DNA of 64,000 nt, from assembly GCA_000708835.1 (NCBI GenBank), contig DF237011.1:186001-250000 (forward strand), given 5' to 3'. Made by a program: the position numbers and the translations under genes. This DNA is from Klebsormidium nitens. Its lineage: Eukaryota > Plantae > Klebsormidiophyceae. Within the stretch, counting starts at the first letter, position 1, and each line of letters opens with the position of its first letter. The notes under the pieces are model-generated. The model made no database searches and was not told the origin of the DNA. It was given only the letters and a program-made list of their open reading frames with translations. Below are positions 5,300 through 16,349 of the stretch, piece after piece.

Positions 5300-6949
5300 C
5301 TCCAGGCCGCAGACTGGATGAGAAAAGGGGAAGCAAATGACTGCAGGAGGATGAGGCTAGGATAAGCTACAACCCGCTGCGCTTAGAAGGGCTACCGGCG
5401 GTAGCCTACCGCGCGCGTTGCAGTGTCTCTACGATGTCTCAAAACCAGTACATACTTCCCGACCTCCCTGCAATCGCAGTCACTGCAGCTTTTTGGGGGT
5501 CACGTGCAGCTCAATTGAGAAGCGTTCTTCTACCTGAGCTAAGCTACCCCAATACCCTGCTTCCCTCCTCTGTTGTGCTCTTTTGACCGCTGTGATCAAA
5601 TGTTCAGCTCATGCATTCATGAGTGCTAGCTCATGCACCTCGTCTTGGAAGTTGGCCAGGACTTATCGAATCGCTTTGGGATCTGGGGGGAAGGGTCCAT
5701 GTGCAACTCAAATGTGACAGGCAATGTTTTTACCGTCGATTGACAGGGGCAGCCCACTGGCTTGCTCTCTGATCCATCCGATGGCAGCCGCATCAGATGC
5801 CCCCTGCCGACCTGCAATGCGCATTGCGGTCGGCATTTGTTTTGACACTGACAGTGGTGTGATGGTTTATCATACAAACTCGTCGTCTATCTGGTGTCAA
5901 AGCGTCCAAGCAAGCAAGTTGGTTCCCACTTCAAGTTCAAAGTTCTCTGATGAGTCTGACAGTGAGTATACTGTATAGTCTCTATGCTCATTCTGTACAT
6001 TTCAGTTTCTGACTGTCCTGAAACAATTGCTCAGGCTTTGCACCGCGCTGCTTTCTCAGGTCCCCTCCTTTGGTTGAGCTCCTTGAGGCTCGCAGAGCCG
6101 GCAATCCACCCGCCAGATTCCGAGCAGGATTTCAGAGGCGTACGCATTGCTAACCGTCAACACAATTGCGAAGGCAGCTCATCGTCATTGCTTGTAAGAA
6201 CGTAATCAAACGAACTTTTGCGTTGTCATCAGGTGTAATATGCAATGAATTTTGACTTGTCCGTTGGATTGCTTGAATGTTTAGGTGGTGGTTGCAGCTA
6301 GATGGAAGAATGTCACTTGTCTCGCTTTTGGATAAGGATGATTTATGGCCAAAGCCACATCAGCACCCCTGGGTATGACTAGCATTCCGCAGGTGATTGC
6401 GTTTGATGTTTGGACTTGATGCAAGTTTGTGAAGCTTGGGAATGTCACTTTGGTGTATAGAATTGAGCTGTCTTCCAATTGTGTGCATAGGCATGCACGA
6501 GAGATATGGGTACGTTACTTCCCTGAGCTTGTTCAACATCTTAGCTTGTCATCACTTTGAGGAATCATCACATGGACACAATCCTTACACGACAGTACCT
6601 GGCATGTGCCCAAACATTTTGCCTTGTAAATGAGCAGGGTCTGATCTCTGCATTTCTGCATTTGCCTGAAACTTGCGTTGTAAATGCGAGCTTCTGTTCC
6701 TGACGTTTCTTCTGTAGTAGTTTGCAATCAATGGAAACAGGCTTGTTGGGGAAGGGTCTCTATATCGGCAGGCTGAGAGAAAATCACCCCAGGGGCAAAA
6801 GCTGTGTCCAATTCTCATATTATTGTTGCTTTCCTTTGGCTCAAAACCCATTGCTACATGATCACAAGACTTCATACCGGAAATTGCAACGCACTTGCAA
6901 GAAAAGAAACTGAAATTATCCGCACTTGCAGTTTTGCACATCAGTGTCA

Positions 6950-9900
6950 ATGGAGACTGCCAGTTCCTCAGCATCTGCGGCAAGCGCCAGGAACGTCCAA
7001 GGAGAGAAAGAGCGCCAAATTGGGGCGCAGGCTGAACCCCATTCACATGGTGCAACAGGGGGGGTTCCAGAAATAGGAGCTGCGGCAACAGAAGCCCGGC
7101 GGATAGAAAAGAATGGCGTGGACACTGGGGCTTCTCAAAAGGCTCCTCACTTCAGCAACATGTCGGCTGCCTCGGTACAAGAGCAGAGCCACTCCAAGGC
7201 AGAATCAAGGAGCATTCCCATACCCTCAAAGTCCGTGTCTCAGCCTCAGCCACAGGCCTGCTGTGGAGAGGCGACTTCTCCTTCCACCCCTCCTCTTGGG
7301 CCTCAGACAGGGACCCTCCCTCGCGAGGGCATTCTGTCAACAGCAACACGAGCAGCCCTGGAGGAGCGGCAGTCCTCGAGAAGAGACGCTACCTGCCACA
7401 GCCCTTCCCCTTCCAGAAGGAGGCCCCCTCTTTCCCCCTCGTCAAGCTCTGGAGGCATGACCCCCCCAAAACCACAAGGGGCTCCGTCTCCAAAACCGCA
7501 GAAGACATTCCACAACCCGTATGCTAAGAGTCCCTTCAGAGTGACGGGGTTCAATCCGGGGTCGCCTAGGGCACCAGTCCCTTTGGCACAGCTCTCTGCA
7601 GAAACGGAGAATGAGCTGTTGCAGGCAACGCAGAGGGGGCTGTTTTCGGACGACGACGTGGCAGAATCTGAGCGGTCGCCCAAAGACTTTGGGGGAGGGT
7701 GTGGGTCAGCGGTCAGGGGTCCGAAGGAGTCAGCAGTGAACGCTGGAGGACTGAGTCAGGGAGTTGACGAAATGGAAGTCTCAGGAAGGAATTCTGGGGG
7801 GGGAGTGACGAGTGGGAAGGGCTGTGAAAACGAACAGGCAGAACCGGAAGGGACGAGTCCGGGCATGTCTAGGATGAACATTTCTGGCGGAGATACAGAA
7901 GCAGGAGAGAGCGCAGTAACTAGGAATGGAGAGGCGGAGCTGGAGTCAAGGAAAAGGAAGTCGGAAGAGTCTCCTGAGAAGGTGCGCGCGGGCGCAAGTG
8001 GATCTATGGAGGTAAGAGGGCATCCCATACCGAAGCAACCCCAAGTGAGCAGTCCAGCAGATGTTGAAATCGAAGGAGGGTGTCATTCTGGACGCATCTC
8101 AGGATCGCCGCGCCGGCAACCAGACAGTGCTTCCTCGCAAAGCCCCAGTATATCGGCATCAGGCCGTGCGGCCGGCGGACTAAGCGAGCAGTCTGAATAT
8201 CACGACCCCCCAGAGCAGGAGCTAGAAGAAGCTGAGGCTAGTGTAGCGCAACCATCCTCTTCCCTTCCTCCCAGACCTGAGCTAAGTGCAGCGTCTCGTG
8301 TCCGCAGCTCTGACGGTGGCAACAAGCGCTCAGCACGCGACAGGTGGCGCAGGGCTAGGTTTCACGTGGCAGCAGCGCGGGCTTTTGCGTACGGCAGGGT
8401 CGGTGGCTTCTCGGAGGTTACAGAACCGGAGATCAGAGGCGCGGCGACCGGGACGGAGCTGGAAAGGACAGGTGAGCGGCAATTGGCGGGGTGGGTTTGG
8501 TGTCGCAGATGCACCTTGAGTTTGCAGATGAGACATTGCATACTGTGATGGCCGTGTTTCAGTTGTTCACACTTCAGGATTCTGGCTTGATCTGCTGCTG
8601 GTGTAAAAAAGGACGTCCCGATAAATACAAGCCTCGTGGGATAGCATGCCGTCGTTCGAGACGCCCAAAACAGAGGGTTTCGGGCAGTAGAATCATTTCT
8701 GCACCGTCAGCAAGAGGGAAGGTCAACACTAGGAGTTCAGTCATTCTATTAGTGTACCCTTCCTTCCCGTCAACTTTTCTCATGACAGGTTTTTTGCAGA
8801 GTTTTCCGTAGGTCCTATGAAGCATCCTTTGCTTCAGGGGTTTCGAACTTTCTATTATTCTCTTATCTGCTTCGAGTTGATGGCCCCGCGAAAAGACGGG
8901 CCGTTAAGCTGTCAAGGTCTCAGCGTAAGCTTTTACCGTGATTTATTCTTCTGTGACCTGGACGGCTCGTTGTCAGCTTCAGTTCAGGCTCCGTTCCTGG
9001 CCTTGTACAGGCCTGTACCAGCTCTTTTCCTGACTTTCAATTTTTTTGCCTCATGGAGTAACACGAAAGAGTCGGAAGTGACAAGAAGGAAGCGGCAGTC
9101 TCCGTTGCGAAGTAGTGACGATCAGCAACAGGAGCTCACAGCTTTTTGCGTCCCTTTTTGCTCCGGTTGCCAAATCATCCAAACGTGATCCGCAAACTTT
9201 GATACATGGGAGACTTTTCAGAGCTGATCAGACGGTCGAAGAACAGGAAGCATGATCCGACCGAACGCAACCAAAAGGTAAGTAGAACGCAAGGAGCTGA
9301 CGTCATCGAAAGACGTTTGCTGACGTCATTCTTTCGTCGTGTTTGCAGAGGAGCCCCTCAATCCCGCCAGTCCCGACTCGATCGTCCGCTCGGCTTCCAT
9401 AACTCAGCCGAAAGCGGGCGTTCCTGTGAGCGACGTTTCTCAAGACAGGGGCCGGCGCAGGTTCGAAGGGATACAAGTCATCGAAGATCGAAGCTGGCTG
9501 GTCGTCTTCTCGGACTTCTACATAGCTGTGCTCAAGGTGAGATTGCTTTCCGGGGACGTCCCTCTCAGATGGTGCATGGATTCTGAGGACGCTTCATGCC
9601 CATTCTGCCAAACTAGCCGGCCTACCCGTGTTCGTTTCGGGCCCGCTTTCAGATGACAAGTCGTCGGATAGCCACATTCTGAGCAAAGAACGGTCCACGT
9701 TCTGCATATTTGCCAGTAAAGGTCGGGCGACCGGAGTTGAGGAAATGTACAGTATTTCTAGGTTTCAGATCAATGGGCTCTCAAGTAGTGCGTTCACATA
9801 TCGATTGACGTGCCTTCGATACGTCTGATGTTGTCACGGTTCCACTGAAGGTTTCTTTCTGGAGCGGGATAGATTTGGGTTTCCCAGTGCCTTACGTGGA

Positions 9901-12900
9901 AAGAATGGATAGAAGGGACCCTGCTATGCATTCGGCTTTGGTCAGCTTTAAATGGTCCTGTCACCAACTTGGTGTCGATGTCGTCTTACTCTCGCCTTTG
10001 ACCTTCTGACTATGTGTTTACGAGAAACCTAGTGAACAATTGCCTTTCAACTTTCGCGCTGCACTATTGAATGCTGTGCGCTCTCCATGCCACCATTCTC
10101 TGCCTTCTAAAATGCGAAGAAAGAAACGCTTAAAACTTTGCCAGCTTTCCCGTCCGATTGCTGGGTGCTCCCTGCTACCACATACCGGCCAGCGATGCAC
10201 GAAAGCCTCTTTCGTAGTGGTCATGGTTCCTTTTCGCCCTCCTATATACCTTCCTTCGGCCTCTTGTACGTTTCTAACGCTCTTCTCATTTTCAGGCCCC
10301 GGTGCTGCTCTTTGTGGCCGTCATTTTCCTCTTCCCCGCCCTCTTATGCCTCTTCTTCGTTCCCTTATACCTCCTCGACCTGGCTGGTCTTCAGTGCGAC
10401 GATTGCCAACCCCCCCTCCCCTCAGCTCGCCTAGAAGCCCCCCCGGCGCCTACAGAAACTCATAGCCTATGCCACGTGCTACTGTATAGCCTATCGCTGT
10501 CGATGCTGTTCGGGGGCTCGCCGGTGCAGGCCCACAGCCGGTATACGCTATTGGTCGCAAACATTCAAACGCTGGCGGCAAACTTCACGTTTGTCTTCCT
10601 GAGCGGAGCAGGTCAGTGAGTCTCTCGTGTTCCCACCTTTCGTTTCGCAGGTTTTCCGTCCATTTGAAGCACATTCATAGGTCAAAAGCGAGCGTCTGCT
10701 CTCGTCCTGATGTGAAGGGATACTGTTTGCTTTTGGCTTCTTGTATGACGATGCTTTCTGACTAGGCGCTCGTCTGCACCCCATTGGAGTATTTGTCCGT
10801 TTCATTCGTCCACTTCAGCCCTGCTCCCTGTTTGTCACTCGCAAAAGTCTGTGGTACTTTTGAACACATGACATGTCTCAGTGGGACTCCAAGGCATAAG
10901 ACCATGAAAGCTGTTGAGTACCCGTTTGGATTGGTTCGTCAGTCGTGTTAAGCTGAAGATATGATTTATTCAAATGTCAATAGTTATAGGCGACGGTATT
11001 GAGGACGAAGATATCTTCTCCTGTTGCGCATAGCAGTTTACCTTCTGCGCGGCCTCCACTCGGAGGAGCTATTCAGAATTCCAGCTTGACATTCGAGTAG
11101 CTTACGTCATGTCTCAGCACATTGACGCGTTCGGTATGACAACAGTCACCAGCATCTTTGAGCGTCTTTCGCGCAACCGGTTCTGGTGTCCAAAAAAAAC
11201 ATTTTTTGCGCTGACAATTTCCACTTCACAATGCAGTGTTCTCACGTATGTCCCAGCGATCGCAGCCGGTCCAGTGCGCGCGCAAGGCGGTGATTCGGCC
11301 GGATGACGTCACCACAGCGGGCGGCAGCGTCAGCGAGCGCTTCAGGTGGGCACTGTTTCAGAACTCGTCTTCTCAGGGAAATCAGAGTACTTTTTTCTGG
11401 CTGTTGAGACCGCTTTGTCTGTGTTCGCAACATAGTCCAGATACTGAGCACAGGACCTGCAGAAAACGTGCCTACTGAGAGACAAAAAGCGAATGGAAGG
11501 CTCGAAGGTACCTGCCCGAGCCGTTCACTGCGCAATCATGTGCAGATTCGACGTCGATTGGAGGGAACGAAACGACCTCTGACAATTTGCTTGGACGATT
11601 AATGAGTGCGCAAACGTAAGTTGTGCAAAGTTTTCGATACTGGTGTGAAAACCCAATGACCCGCGCATATTCACACCATACTCGGTCTGCATCACCAGAT
11701 TACTGCCACAATATCATTGCTGACCGAGCGCATTCACACCGTGCAGGGTGTTCCTGACGAGGCTGGTGTTAAAGGGCCCGATGCCCGCAGTGATGGTGGA
11801 CGTCCGCATCAAGCTCACGTTCCGGATCTTCGTCCAACAGCGGAACGGATCCGTCTTCTGTTCGACGGCGGCGCTGGATCTGGTCCGGCCAGAAGTGGCC
11901 TATCTGCAGTACGGAATAGCGGTGAGCATTTTCGCACTCGCGGAGTTTCGAGCGTTTTCTGCCTGGATCGGTTTTCGATTCTTAACAGGCCGCGTTCCGG
12001 TTCCCTTTTGTGGTCAACCGCAGCGCTGAATCTGGATCCGTTTAAGAAGTGGCGTATCCGCAGCACGGCACAGCGTTGAGGGCACTTACGTGTTTCGTTG
12101 TTCCTTGCCTTTTCCTATAAAGCTCTTCACGATGTCAGTGAGCGGAAATCAGCAGCGGAAACGGATCCGTCGTTTGCTCGAACACAGCGCTGACTTGAGT
12201 CTGCCTACAAGAGGCCTATCTTCAGTACGGGATAGCGGTGGGCATTTGGGCTTCTGAAGCGTTTTCTTGATTTTGAATGTCGACTACAAGAACCACGTCC
12301 ATCAAGGGTATAGTCGAACCGCAGCACTGGACTTGGTTTCGCACACACCGTAAGCTTTCAAACCGCAAACCCAAAAGCTCTTGAGATGTACCAACAGCTT
12401 CCAAACCCGTGCTTTCCTCGCCTCAGGTGAAGCACGTGATCGACCGTAACAGTCCACTCTACGGCCACACGCGGGAGTCGCTTCTCGCGGGCGACGCCTC
12501 CTTCTCTTTCACGGTCCTCGGCACTGAGCGCGCCAGCCTCCAGAGCGTCTTCCATATGCAGGTGCGTCTTTTGATTCGTTTCGTCCTGCCCTATTTAGGC
12601 GTGTCTGAGACAGGTAAACCGTGGCTTCGATCAGGACGGCCGGAGCGCGCCAGCCTTCAGAGCCTCTTCCAAATGCAGGTGTCCGTCAGATCTTCAGGGC
12701 GCTGTTACTCTTTTAAAGGCGTGTCTGGGACCAGGTAGAGAGCCTGTCAACCCTGGCTTTAGCCGGAACGGCATGGAGCGCGTCAGCCTTCAGAGCCTCT
12801 TCCACATGCAGTTAAGCAGGTGGACCGCAGATTCTCGAAACGGGTGAGGGACGACCGAAGTTCGCAGCGCTTCCGTCCAGATTTGACGTTGGAAGGAGAT

Positions 12901-14390
12901 GGAACGCTCCAGACGTCTTGTTCGTGGCTGGATGTGTCATGGTTTGCATAGACTCAGGTACCGGAAGCCCTTCTGCCAAGATGTGCCGCCAGTCTTTGCA
13001 GACTGGGGTTTTATCGAATTGGAAGGTAGCGTTGCGATATCGAGTATTGCCATGTTCTGTGGTCTGCATGTAAGTGTTTGATTCTCATTTCGCGATAGCG
13101 CTATTTATCGGTTACTTCGAAAGCAGGTCAACTACCTAGCCTTGCCTTTCCATGACCAGCATCGACGTGCCGTCGTCGAATATGGTTGTCAGTTGGCGGT
13201 CTACGCTCAACCTATATTCCCAGGGCTTTCGGAGGACTCCTATTCTGCAAGATCGAGTGCTGCGATCGGAGTACTACAAACCAGCTTTAGGCATGCTACC
13301 TGGTTTCAGACTCTTTTACATTTCCGCCCCAGGGTTTACAAAGCGGATTTTGCACATGATCAGAGACACTGTTTCCCTTAGGTATTTGTCTCCGTCCAAC
13401 GGAAAGGCGTTCCTTCTTACTACTTCTGTCCTAAAGGCCTTACTTTCTTAGTAATCAATGTTGAATATAAGGAGCTTGACCAACGTTCTCTTTGCAGGAA
13501 TACTTTATGTCGGATGGAGACATCGCCTGGGACAGCGATTTTTTCAACATCATCTCCATCGACTCTCGGGGCATCCGAGTGATCGACCACACCCAGCTGG
13601 ATACGCTCAGCGTGTTCCGGAGCGCAGCCCAAGTCCCCCGGGCGATCACAAGAATGCAAAACCTCGTCAGAGCGACAAGAACAGGTGGGTTTGAGATCTT
13701 AGGGTATACACTTGATACCTTCCGTGGTTGGATGTATTAAAAGTCTCTTTTTCGTTGTGTGGGGGGTAAATAGTCGTGCGAACGGAAACGGATTCTAGAC
13801 ACCGAAGCCACCCGATTGTGATTGCGCTGATTACGGGGGCTCCTTTGCTTACAGGCTCCAAGAGTTCCCTCTCTGAGACAGAACAGTGCCAAGAGGGAGA
13901 CCCAACCGACAACAGCGGTAAGAATCTGGACAGGACTCAAGGCAGTGATGTACCGGACGAAAGCTCGGCCGGCGTGACTCAGAAAGGGGTCAGATCAGAC
14001 ACTTCGGACGGCTCTCGGATGTCCGAAAGTGGTCAGGTCGGAGAAACCACTCGAAAGGGGGGTAACTTGGAAAAGCCGAGCACGGGAAAACTGAAAGGGT
14101 CAGTCGAGGGGACGAGTGATCGGGGCAAAGGGGAGGAGACTGGACAGAGTGCCCGGAGGAAAGCGGAGGAAGTTGGTGGGGCGAGTAAAGGAGAGGAAGA
14201 GATGGTGGGCGATGTGCTGGGAGGGTTCACTGGGCCCGCATCTGACTTTGGGAGGGGTCTCTCCCGGGAAGCGCTGCAAAGCCTGAGGCAGCGGAAGATC
14301 GATAGAGAAGGAAGGGCGAAGGAAGATGCGGGAGAGAACGCTCATGAAGGTAAGGGAGTGACGGCGCGTCGTTATAATGCAGGTTTTTGA
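6950..14390 (+). CDS. Inward-rectifier (Kir/IRK-family) two-TM channel-like protein, ~1055 aa, with a non-canonical filter
   Basis: Exons 6950-8471, 9349-9536, 10296-10611, 11237-11345, 11747-11921, 12427-12561, 13498-13684 and 13855-14390; phases are consistent (3168 nt). Kir hallmarks appear in order: FSDFYIAVLK|APVLL (slide helix/M1), LLYSLSLSMLFGGS (pore), M2 ending GAVFSRMSQ, KAVI, VRIKL, VKHVIDRNSPLYG..ESL, TVLGTE, EYF..GDIAWDSDF, RVIDHTQLDT. The start codon is inferred, and a possible extra donor at 14350 makes the exact C-terminus uncertain. Confidence 0.85.
12020..12248 (+). repeat. Decayed intronic copies of the 3' half of channel exon 5, including its donor site
   Basis: 12150-12248 cagcggaaacggatccgtcgtttgctcg...ggcctatcttcagtacgggatagcg|gtgggcattt matches the exon end cagcggaacggatccgtcttctgttcg...ggcctatctgcagtacggaatagcg|gtgagcattt. 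A more decayed copy lies at ~12020-12070. Confidence 0.8.
12526..12815 (+). repeat. Triplication of the 3' end of channel exon 6 (ERASLQSxFxMQ)
   Basis: gagcgcgccagcct(c/t)cagagc..cttcca.atgcag occurs at ~12526, ~12644 and ~12776. The second copy keeps a GT donor; the third has TT. Confidence 0.85.
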
Positions 14391-16349
14391 GAGTGAGGGC
14401 CATCTAGCTGACATGGTGTGCTTAACAGTCACGTTGCCGTAAAGGAATTGTACTAGTCGAGTTCGACCCTTAAGCACGCTGAGAGAGGATGGTGAAATAG
14501 ACGGAAACGGAGTTGTAAATTTCTGGAGGAGATTGAGTATAGGTTTTCTAAGTCGAGGCGAGCGCCTCCAGCCAAGTCGAAAGCCGGATCGATCAGAGTC
14601 CAGTTGAAACCTGCCTTATCTTAAGATGTGATCACATGCAAGCGTTTGGAACTGGATGGGTGCGGGCATTTGCAATCCCCGGCCAATAAGTCACCGACTT
14701 TACGTTGTATGGCCCGCTCGATCAGGCGTTGCTAATTACCGTACTAGGGTCGCCGTCTGTGTCGGGATACGGATCGTCGACTCGAGTGCTTTTGGTCGGA
14801 TGCATTGTCGAAAGGCCTAGCTAGCTTATGACCGACACACAGACGCGTCGGCCCTGAGTCGAGCTAGTACTATAAACGGCGCGGCCACGGGCAGCAGCTC
14901 TATATATGATCGTATTGGACGAGGGATGATCACTCCAATCCATGCAAACAAACGTGTGAATTAACATCGTCGATCCGAGTCAGACGGCCGGGCCAGCTCG
15001 ATCATGAGGCCGGGGATCATTTGGCTTGATTTTGCAAATTAATCCGCGGCTGGGCATGATGGCCGCCAACGGTACGTGCGTAGCTCTATTGATGATAATA
15101 ACATTGAGGTTACAAATGCCATGCACCTGTCGGCAGCAATTCAATATTTATTTGGCCCCGGCCCCCCGGCCGGGACCATCATTATATGGCCCCGGCCGGC
15201 CGCTGGACCGGTCTCCGTTGTACGTTAAGTTCTAGGCACATTGGATTGCAGCATACAAAGCGTCTGCTCTGATGTAATTACCTACTCCAGATACAATTTT
15301 TTGGTCAACAATCACATATACCAAGTCGATCGACGACAGAGACATTTCGTAAGCAGAAGATCATCAACTTACGTTGGACATTCGACGGTTTATTGTATGA
15401 TGTATGAGTCCGTATTGCATGAGTCACTGAGTCCGTTGCATCGAGTTGTTGTGTGGAGAAAACCTGTTAAGAGTTACAGTGACTATGTTGATGGTCCATG
15501 CTTATTACGAGCTCGTAATTAGTAAGCAGACATCCAACAGTGGTTGTCGGATCATGTGTATTGGATACTCTCACATCACGCGCAGCGTGTGACGGGGCTA
15601 GGGAGACGGCAGTCATCTTTGTCAGCTAAGGCAGCTTTATAGTGCCCAGCTCACGCTAAGTTCAGGTCACTACTAACTGATTACGTCCTGTACAGGGGAT
15701 CATCCTGCGGAAGCCACTTGTTCACTGCGAAAGGTATGGACATCTCCATCCATGTACCACTTTGCAGAGTCATACAACATTCTGTCTGGCTCGGGGTCCG
15801 GACTCGGTCATTCCCAAAGATTTAGAGGTTCTCGTGCTCCGACGTAACTAGCCGACGGACCCACCTTACGGTTTACTAGGTTTGTACTGTCGGACTATTG
15901 ACCAACCCCAAAATCAGCCGTACCCCGAGTCCCGGGTACTGTTGTAGTCGACATGGATATATAAAGTCGATCATTCAAATCGAACACTTCTTTTGCAATT
16001 TCGGTCACCATTTCTACAGGGATGTTTTTACAACGACACTAGAGGATTTGTGCAAGAGATTCATCTAATACATCCGATGTTTCAAGGCTGGACGCGTCAG
16101 AAGTATCCCGCACATCCGAGCCACTGCGCAACCTAGAAGGGTGGCAGGGCGCCCTATCTTAAAACCCGCACCTAGAAAGAGCTGCTCGACCGAGAGCATC
16201 TGAAAGCCTTCTATTCGCTAAACAAGCATACCAAACCCCACTATCCCACTACACTGTTCAATCAAGTGAACGTTCACTAAAGCCTCCCCACAGCTTTCCT
16301 CTGAGCATTGCAAACCTGCCAGCTCCGCTCGCGCCCGCGCGCATGCGCC

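Follow-up and report, generated by a model that had tools for sequence, protein, structure and literature searches.

A Kir-fold protein of Klebsormidium nitens without the K+ channel signature belongs to a streptophyte family described from moss

Kir-fold proteins are textbook K+ channels. What, then, is to be made of a gene that encodes such a protein in full but carries another sequence where the K+ selectivity filter should be? The question is raised by a gene on the forward strand of a 64,000-nucleotide stretch of the Klebsormidium nitens genome (GenBank assembly GCA_000708835.1, contig DF237011.1, positions 186,001 to 250,000), which we call the window and whose numbering is used throughout. 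The gene comprises eight coding exons between 6950 and 14390 and specifies a product of 1055 amino acids, of which residues 641-645, at the place of the filter, read L-F-G-G-S. Its product has a complete Kir/KirBac architecture, consisting of an amphipathic N-terminal helix, a first transmembrane helix (M1), a pore helix, a loop, a second transmembrane helix (M2) that has the Phe of the bundle crossing, and a cytoplasmic domain rich in beta strands. The window gene is a member of a streptophyte family that is already in public databases and was described from moss in 2004, and the finding is a confirmation and a placement in this known family, not a new kind of system. Since the K+ signature, the pore-helix Glu and the equivalent of Arg148 are all absent, we describe the product as a Kir-fold protein of the MCamb family and not as a Kir K+ channel.

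An initial annotation of this locus, made from the sequence alone, had placed L-F-G-G-S at 10506-10520 in gapless register with the KirBac pore, and had stated that both T-x-G-Y-G and the pore-helix Glu are lost. All of this held. Translation of 10296-10610 gives an open segment of 105 residues containing ..HSLCHVLLYSLSLSMLFGGSPVQAHSRYTLLVANIQ.., with L-F-G-G-S at the reported position, and the interval 10482-10560 reads LLYSLSLSMLFGGSPVQAHSRYTLLV. A profile (A1) built from 15 family cores and the window exons aligns to KirBac1.1 with an E-value of 1.7e-19, and sets s-L-s-t-t-f-g-g-s-p on S-V-E-T-L-A-T-V-G-Y-G-D without a gap from the pore helix to M2; the window itself aligns gapless to the family across the same region. 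Because both alignments are gapless, L-F-G-G-S lies on T-V-G-Y-G and a Ser on the pore-helix Glu. The position two after G-Y-G, which is Arg in eukaryotic Kirs, is Val in the same alignment. The M2 segment G-A-V-F-S-R-M retains the KirBac bundle-crossing Phe and lower Gly, and is aligned to G-L-V-F-A-R-F of KirBac1.1.

A canonical filter might nevertheless be encoded by an exon missing from the model, a case that the initial annotation had itself raised. A six-frame scan of 9000-15000 found no T-x-G-Y/F/L-G and no G-Y/F-G-D/E in any frame. A hidden canonical filter exon is ruled out by this empty scan together with spliced contigs from four runs, which also establish the gene model. The exons were first assembled from AG/GT boundaries and open frames. 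The transcript evidence consists of contigs from four public runs of four studies, which behave as transcript assemblies and were placed on 9150-14450. Six of the seven splice joints are present in these contigs, each in two to four runs and exactly at the modelled boundaries, as the GT..AG joints 9536/10296 (three runs), 10611/11237, 11345/11747, 11921/12427, 12561/13498 and 13684/13855. The seventh is pointed to: upstream of 9349, the contigs carry 30 nt that map uniquely to 8439-8468, then CAG/GT. Contig sequence continues unbroken through the stop codon. The window gene is therefore real, spliced and expressed as modelled, with an exon structure that is now transcript-backed, as follows.

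6950-8471, + strand: exon 1, with ATG at 6950, a low-complexity N-terminal extension of ~507 residues and the donor CAG/GT at 8471/8472; the frame is open from 6914
9349-9536, + strand: exon 2, where the conserved core begins (..GRRRFEGIQVIEDRSWLVVFSDFYIAVLK); corresponds to the N-terminal region and slide helix of Kir; aligns to the family
10296-10611, + strand: exon 3, the pore module, with M1 at ~10302-10373, the pore helix at ~10455-10502, the filter-equivalent loop at 10503-10523 and M2 from ~10539; joints at both ends in transcript contigs
10506-10520, + strand: the filter-equivalent L-F-G-G-S, at the position of T-V-G-Y-G
11237-11345, + strand: exon 4, the end of M2 (G-A-V-F-S-R-M) and a linker; joints in contigs
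11747-11921, + strand: exon 5, beta strands of the cytoplasmic domain; joints in contigs
12427-12561, + strand: exon 6, cytoplasmic domain with HVIDRNSPLYGHTRESLLAG; joints in contigs
13498-13684, + strand: exon 7, the end of the cytoplasmic domain (DGDIAWD..); joints in contigs; aligns to the family
13855-14390, + strand: exon 8, a variable acidic/basic tail with a conserved end and TGA at 14388-14390; contigs unbroken over 13851-14450

Exon 1 was placed at 6950-8471 on the evidence of the terminal 160-255 nt of transcript contigs and of an ortholog in the contig L001 (see below), and it is this placement that gives the protein its N-terminal extension of ~507 residues; the exon 1 product has no Pfam domain match. 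An earlier model of exon 1 (ATG at 9206, exon 9206-9277, NAGNAG acceptor at 9351) was ruled out, as the contigs extend to 8439-8471. A splice at 14349/14350 within the last exon was likewise discarded, given that the contigs are continuous there and that the C-terminal ..A-R-R-Y-N-A-G-F is conserved in L001.

Introns 2 and 6 are also represented by unspliced contigs (9508-10323 and 12533-13522) from the same runs, at a depth of 18-36 versus 57-126 for the spliced ones. These are pre-mRNA, retained introns or DNA carry-over.

The well-formed state of the gene over eight exons had been taken by the initial annotation as an argument against decay. The count of eight stands, and the argument is borne out by comparison with L001, a Logan contig from another sample that carries an ortholog from a related species, colinear from residue 1. 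Nucleotide similarity between the two loci is found only in the exons, and the introns are unalignable. By the Nei-Gojobori method, the ratio of nonsynonymous to synonymous substitutions (dN/dS) across core exons 2-7 is 0.09, at a dS of 0.44. Taken exon by exon, dN/dS is 0.14 for exon 2, 0.17 for exon 3 (the pore), 0.08 for exon 4, 0.016 for exon 5, whose product is 98% identical, and 0.04 for exon 7; the cytoplasmic exons span 0.016-0.09, whereas the N- and C-terminal extensions lie at ~0.4 (exon 1: 71% identity and dN/dS 0.39). The pore helix and loop, including L-F-G-G-S, are identical in the window and L001 (P0001). The low core dN/dS, and the identity of the pore helix and loop in two species, show that the gene is not decaying; a pseudogene is ruled out by dN/dS and by expression.

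The exon 8 tail is 50% identical between the window and L001, with its last ~60 residues conserved, including ..A-R-R-Y-N-A-G-F. The conserved end of the tail (13855-14390 in the window, 9444-10007 in L001) reads ..M-V-G-D-V-L-G-G-F-x-G-P-A-S-D-F-G-R-G-L-S-R-E-A-L-Q-S-L-R-Q-R-K-I-D.. followed by the terminal A-R-R-Y-N-A-G-F. The C-terminal ~60 residues may be a second regulatory or binding site.

A more distant ortholog was found in L002, a contig of the Joint Genome Institute (JGI) metagenome 3300060284, where the loop reads T-M-F-G-G-A-P. This intermediate form suggests that the algal lineage of the window lost T-T in steps, first giving T-M and then M-L. L002 also contains, at 8683-8862, an in-frame stop in the exon-5 equivalent (L-V-D-V-stop-I-K-L-A-F), which may reflect an error of assembly, a polymorphism or a copy in decay.

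How does the loop of the window compare with that of its wider family? G-Y/F-G occurs in none of the 91 family pore segments that we collected, so the possibility that the orthologs all have GYG, on which the reading of the locus had been made to depend, is not what was found. The initial annotation had further proposed that the conservation of LFGGS among relatives be examined, and here the outcome was mixed: the sequence is identical in L001, but embryophytes have T-T-F-G-G-S/A-P and L002 has T-M-F-G-G-A-P. Against the family motif Y-A/S-L-S-L-S-T-T-F-G-G-S/A-P, the window reads Y-S-L-S-L-S-M-L-F-G-G-S-P, keeping 11 of the 13 positions and replacing both Thr. The first loop Thr is kept in 60 of 62 non-redundant segments, with Met only in the window and its ortholog, and the second, which aligns to the Thr of T-V-G-Y-G, in 50 of 62. 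L-F-G-G-S in the window is a further derived form of the family T-F-G-G-S. Across the 49 embryophyte sequences, T-T-F-G-G-S/A-P is nearly invariant, with a mean entropy of 0.22 bits (whole core: 0.84), and no more than 8% of the 8-column windows exceed it in conservation; T-T is present in 47-49 of the 49 where the window protein has M-L. By its degree of conservation, the embryophyte loop is evidently functionally constrained.

That the protein has the Kir/KirBac architecture, as had been proposed from the exon translations, was borne out by profile and by structure. Besides KirBac1.1, the A1 profile matched KirBac3.1 (E ~5e-18) and Kir6.x/Kir2.x (E 1e-10 to 1e-7) among PDB entries, and these matches span both the pore region and the cytoplasmic domain, covering KirBac1.1 residues 94-310. 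An AlphaFold2 (AF2) model of the core of a moss member has a predicted local distance difference test score (pLDDT) of 85 and matches KirBac3.1 in Foldseek with an E-value of 2e-22; among its KirBac matches, TM-scores are 0.58-0.85 over ~305 columns. The AF2 model of window exon 3 (pLDDT 75) has helices at 3-26, 54-69 and 82-104, corresponding to M1, a 16-residue pore helix and M2. All of its top 37 Foldseek matches are Kir/KirBac pore domains, none of them significant (best E 0.13). In exon-by-exon searches, exon 3 (the pore) alone had no Pfam or PDB match and the signal came from exon 6 only, which matches KirBac1.1 with an E-value of 0.002 over H-V-I-D-x-x-S-P-L-x-G-x-T-x-E-S-L and Pfam IRK_C weakly (E 0.04); single window exons score at most 14 bits. 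The alignment to Pfam that had been suggested for this locus therefore succeeded in part. IRK_C (PF17655) is above cut-off in four family members (P0019, P0104, P0013 and P0046) and only weakly matched by window exon 6, while the IRK model failed.

A phmmer search with the pore exon against 1.84 billion representatives returned 48 matches, nearly all with L-Y-A-L-S-L-S-T-T-F-G-G-S-P-V-x-A-x-S-P. The sources of the family, which were named via cluster look-ups and two word-based profile searches, include mosses (Physcomitrium, Ceratodon, Sphagnum), liverworts (Marchantia, Riccia, Calypogeia), lycophytes (Selaginella, Diphasiastrum), ferns (Adiantum, Ceratopteris), gymnosperms (Ginkgo, Taxus, Cryptomeria), the zygnematophyte algae Closterium, Spirogloea and Mesotaenium, and Klebsormidium nitens. 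Angiosperms, chlorophytes and bacteria were not among the matches; as the searches were limited by shared words and by length, this is to be read as "not seen" only. In blastp, the window product is 44-54% identical to land-plant members over ~320-390 residues (E 1e-104 to 1e-118) and 41% identical to a Klebsormidium protein, and it aligns end to end with ~58 full-core family members.

A quick maximum-likelihood tree resolved three clades: an algal clade with the Klebsormidium protein; a clade of Mesotaenium, Spirogloea and one Marchantia protein in which the loop is two residues shorter (S-T-G-L-Q-P-E); and a clade of the embryophytes, the window and one algal transcript, with a Shimodaira-Hasegawa-like approximate likelihood-ratio (SH-aLRT) support of 98. 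The branch of the window is long in this quick tree. As the window gene is an algal-grade member, the family in its modern form predates embryophytes.

The short-loop clade (S-L-S-T-G-L-Q-P-E) consists of P0046 (Mesotaenium), P0047 (Spirogloea), P0048 (Marchantia paleacea) and P0103, and N-terminal extensions of ~650-790 residues are found in three of these four (P0046, P0047 and P0048). The extension of the Mesotaenium protein has sub-threshold matches to Apolipoprotein/ApoLp-III, which suggests that it is made of amphipathic repeat helices.

Among described proteins, the nearest is the Physcomitrium family member AAT00626 (P0051; UniProt Q6QF42), to which the window product is colinear, with 49.6% identity over 355 residues (E 4e-114). 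It is annotated as a "calmodulin-binding ion transporter-like protein", and by this GenBank/UniProt name we regard it as either MCamb1 or MCamb2 (Takezawa and Minami 2004, BBRC 317:428, doi 10.1016/j.bbrc.2004.03.052). Three later papers (PMC1952061, PMC8655846, PMC4532166), citing Takezawa and Minami 2004, describe the MCamb moss proteins as calmodulin-binding and membrane transporter-like, with a resemblance to the inward rectifier K+ channels of mammals; cold, osmotic stress and abscisic acid are said to induce them. The window product and AAT00626 have in common the pore helix Y-x-L-S-L-S, F-G-G-S-P, the M2 sequence F-V-F-L-S-G-x-V-F-x-R-M-S-Q, the cytoplasmic domain and an N-terminal N/D-R-W-R-R motif. 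They differ in that the window has M-L where the moss protein has T-T, and in that the window has a much longer N-terminal extension (~507 residues in exon 1) and a C-terminal tail of ~180 residues.

In 43 family proteins scanned, the shared N-terminal motif, AR[SND]RW[RK]R..H.V.F, precedes the pore helix by ~137-171 residues, and AAT00626 has it too; the fuller conserved form of the motif is A-R-x-R-W-R/K-R..H.V.F..H-M. This Trp motif is common to the window and embryophyte members, and a pattern search for it found none in the Klebsormidium clade or the short-loop clade. In the window it corresponds to the following feature.

8333-8395, + strand: candidate calmodulin-binding helix A-R-D-R-W-R-R-A-R-F-H-V-A-A-A-R-A-F, basic and amphipathic, residues 462-482

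As the moss proteins were isolated as calmodulin binders, this helix is a plausible calmodulin site.

Among characterized channels, the window protein is most like KirBac1.1 (1p7b) and KirBac3.1 (1xl4), with which it shares the whole architecture and fold, the cytoplasmic H-V-I-D-x-x-S-P-L-x-G-x-T-x-E-S-L and the G-x-V-F-x-R gate region, and the family profile scores KirBac above the animal Kirs (1e-19 versus 1e-10). KirBac is, however, a K+ channel with T-V-G-Y-G and a pore-helix Glu, for which the window has L-F-G-G-S and Ser, and the Pfam IRK transmembrane model is unmatched at threshold here. The animal Kir1-Kir7 channels share the fold and the domain order, and IRK_C reaches its cut-off in several family members, but the family lacks both G-Y-G and the Glu138/Arg148 pair and is only ~13-20% identical to the animal Kirs in structural alignments.

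A second likeness is a proposed analogy of function. The filters of NaK (T-V-G-D-G) and of animal cyclic-nucleotide-gated (CNG) channels (T-I-G-E-T-P) belong to non-selective cation channels in which the inner part of the K+ filter is kept. The family, too, has the inner half only, and its T-x-G-x-[ST]-P is closest to the CNG pattern. We claim no homology beyond the shared pore module: CNG channels have six transmembrane helices and a cyclic-nucleotide-binding domain, NaK is without the Kir cytoplasmic domain, and the family has Gly where CNG channels have the Ca2+-binding Glu.

The plant protein KCO3 is labelled "Kir-like" in PMC8619664, with a topology of two transmembrane helices and one pore. 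This label and topology are all that it has in common with the window family, a true Kir/KirBac-fold lineage to which KCO3 is unrelated, as it derives from the two-pore TPK channels, keeps the K+ filter and has no IRK_C. At least one survey of plant K+ transporters (PMC3410407) used a search for the G-Y-G motif to check that its screen for channels was complete, and a screen checked in this way would miss the family.

What, then, might the protein do? The initial annotation had offered three broad options, a non-selective, a differently selective and a non-conducting protein, all of them compatible with the present evidence. The function that we favor, at a probability of roughly 0.5, is that of a calmodulin-regulated cation pore that is not selective for K+. 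The window protein would form a tetramer like other Kir-fold proteins and would still enclose a gated pore. The T-T-F-G-G-S/A-P loop of the family would keep only the inner T-x-G of the K+ filter and would have lost the Tyr and outer Gly, the residues that build the outer K+ sites. By analogy, a pore with the inner T-x-G only would be akin to those with the short filters of NaK and CNG channels, passing cations with little discrimination between K+ and Na+. The cytoplasmic domain would control gating, together with calmodulin docked on the conserved basic helix of the N-terminal part. In the lineage of the window, the change from T-T to M-L would remove the last side-chain ligand, and conductance or selectivity has probably changed further; the Met-Leu replacement could mean a lower conductance, an altered selectivity or a closed pore.

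Several points weigh against a cation pore. With Leu in place of Thr, the filter would be lined at its inner end by four hydrophobic side chains, which could close the pore. The loops of the algal clades are variable (T-T-L-G-C-E, T-T-F-N-G-T and, with a deletion of two residues, S-T-G-L-Q-P-E), and this variability would suit a structural loop no less than an ion filter. The Pfam IRK (PF01007) transmembrane model is below threshold in every member, the best being P0012 at 14.8 versus 22.7 bits. Finally, in the open literature that we searched, we found no functional study of the family; for none of its members did we find a recorded current, a measured ion selectivity, a model of the tetramer or an assay with calmodulin.

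The main rival, which we consider unlikely, is that the protein has the Kir fold but does not conduct, its pore being vestigial. It would then be a scaffold that senses calmodulin or a ligand, or would modulate another channel as one of its subunits. In favor of this, the window lineage has lost the T-T of the family and carries the substitutions P652R, N661Q, Q666N, A678S and P683R, which fall in the pore exon and M2-proximal linker at positions at least 90% conserved elsewhere. The variability of the loop in the algal clades, which includes a two-residue deletion, points the same way, as does the conservation of the cytoplasmic exons, the highest in the gene (dN/dS 0.016-0.09 versus 0.17 for the pore exon). 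Yet a value of 0.17 is still clear purifying selection, and the pore sequence is identical in two species. The embryophyte loop falls in the most conserved 8% of segments, the gate residues of M2 are retained, and the searches made turned up no canonical Kir partner in the lineage of the window.

It is improbable, in our estimation, that the pore has been turned to another substrate, such as anions, divalent cations or small solutes, in keeping with the "transporter-like" label. This explanation draws on a loop that has no acidic residue, on the extra basic residues at the loop-M2 junction of the window (H-S-R-Y versus x-S-P-F/Y in the family) and on the annotation of the moss proteins as "ion transporter-like". 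For anions it has to contend with the helix dipoles, which point their negative ends at the cavity, and to our knowledge there is no precedent for anion selectivity in the tetrameric cation-channel fold with a pore helix.

Selectivity for K+ through the backbone carbonyls of a non-canonical filter is likewise improbable. The family does keep the T-x-G of the signature, and its spacing between pore helix and M2 is identical to that of KirBac, but the Tyr and outer Gly of G-Y-G are replaced in 91 of 91 pore segments, neither the pore-helix Glu nor the residue at the Kir2.1 Arg148 position has been kept, and in the window the Thr is absent as well. Changes at the glycines of G-Y-G abolish K+ selectivity in K+ channels.

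An artefact, in the form of a pseudogene or of a faulty gene model behind which a canonical filter exon lies hidden, is rejected: the in-frame stop in the exon-5 equivalent of L002 speaks for it, and against it stand the splice joints of exons 2-8 in contigs of four runs, the lack of T-x-G-Y/F/L-G in any frame of 9000-15000, an open frame of 1055 codons, the core dN/dS of 0.09 and the end-to-end alignment with ~58 full-core members.

It is possible, and we put this forward tentatively, that beyond the window protein the family constitutes an unrecognised class of plant cation channel, with a Kir/KirBac fold and a T-T-F-G-G-S-P filter, gated by calmodulin, non-selective for K+ and perhaps permeable to Ca2+, which would extend from streptophyte algae to gymnosperms and would have been lost in flowering plants. 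If so, the M-L-F-G-G-S-P lineage would amount to a natural experiment, its filter having exchanged the last hydroxyl ligands under continued selection. The interest of the family lies in its being a whole Kir-fold lineage without the K+ signature, in which the replacement loop has been nearly invariant over hundreds of millions of years in land plants. Should its members conduct, they would represent, for non-flowering plants, a cation pathway of a new kind that is regulated by stress, and would offer channel biophysics a natural T-x-G-G-S filter on a well-understood scaffold, for which the T-T to M-L variant of the window provides a ready natural comparison of selectivity.

Two introns of the window gene contain decayed tandem copies of the preceding exon, each comprising its last 36-90 nt and the splice donor, with the GT retained in two copies.

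12045-12080 and 12160-12247, + strand: decayed copies of the 3' end of exon 5 with donor, in intron 5; repeat families D1 and D3-D5
12643-12681 and 12776-12814, + strand: decayed copies of the 3' end of exon 6 with donor, in intron 6; repeat family D2

The transcript contigs use the authentic splice sites only, and these copies in introns 5 and 6 are unused. Similar decayed copies are present at the L001 locus, at 6362-6454, 6901-6960 and 8416-8502, one of them derived from the start of exon 7.

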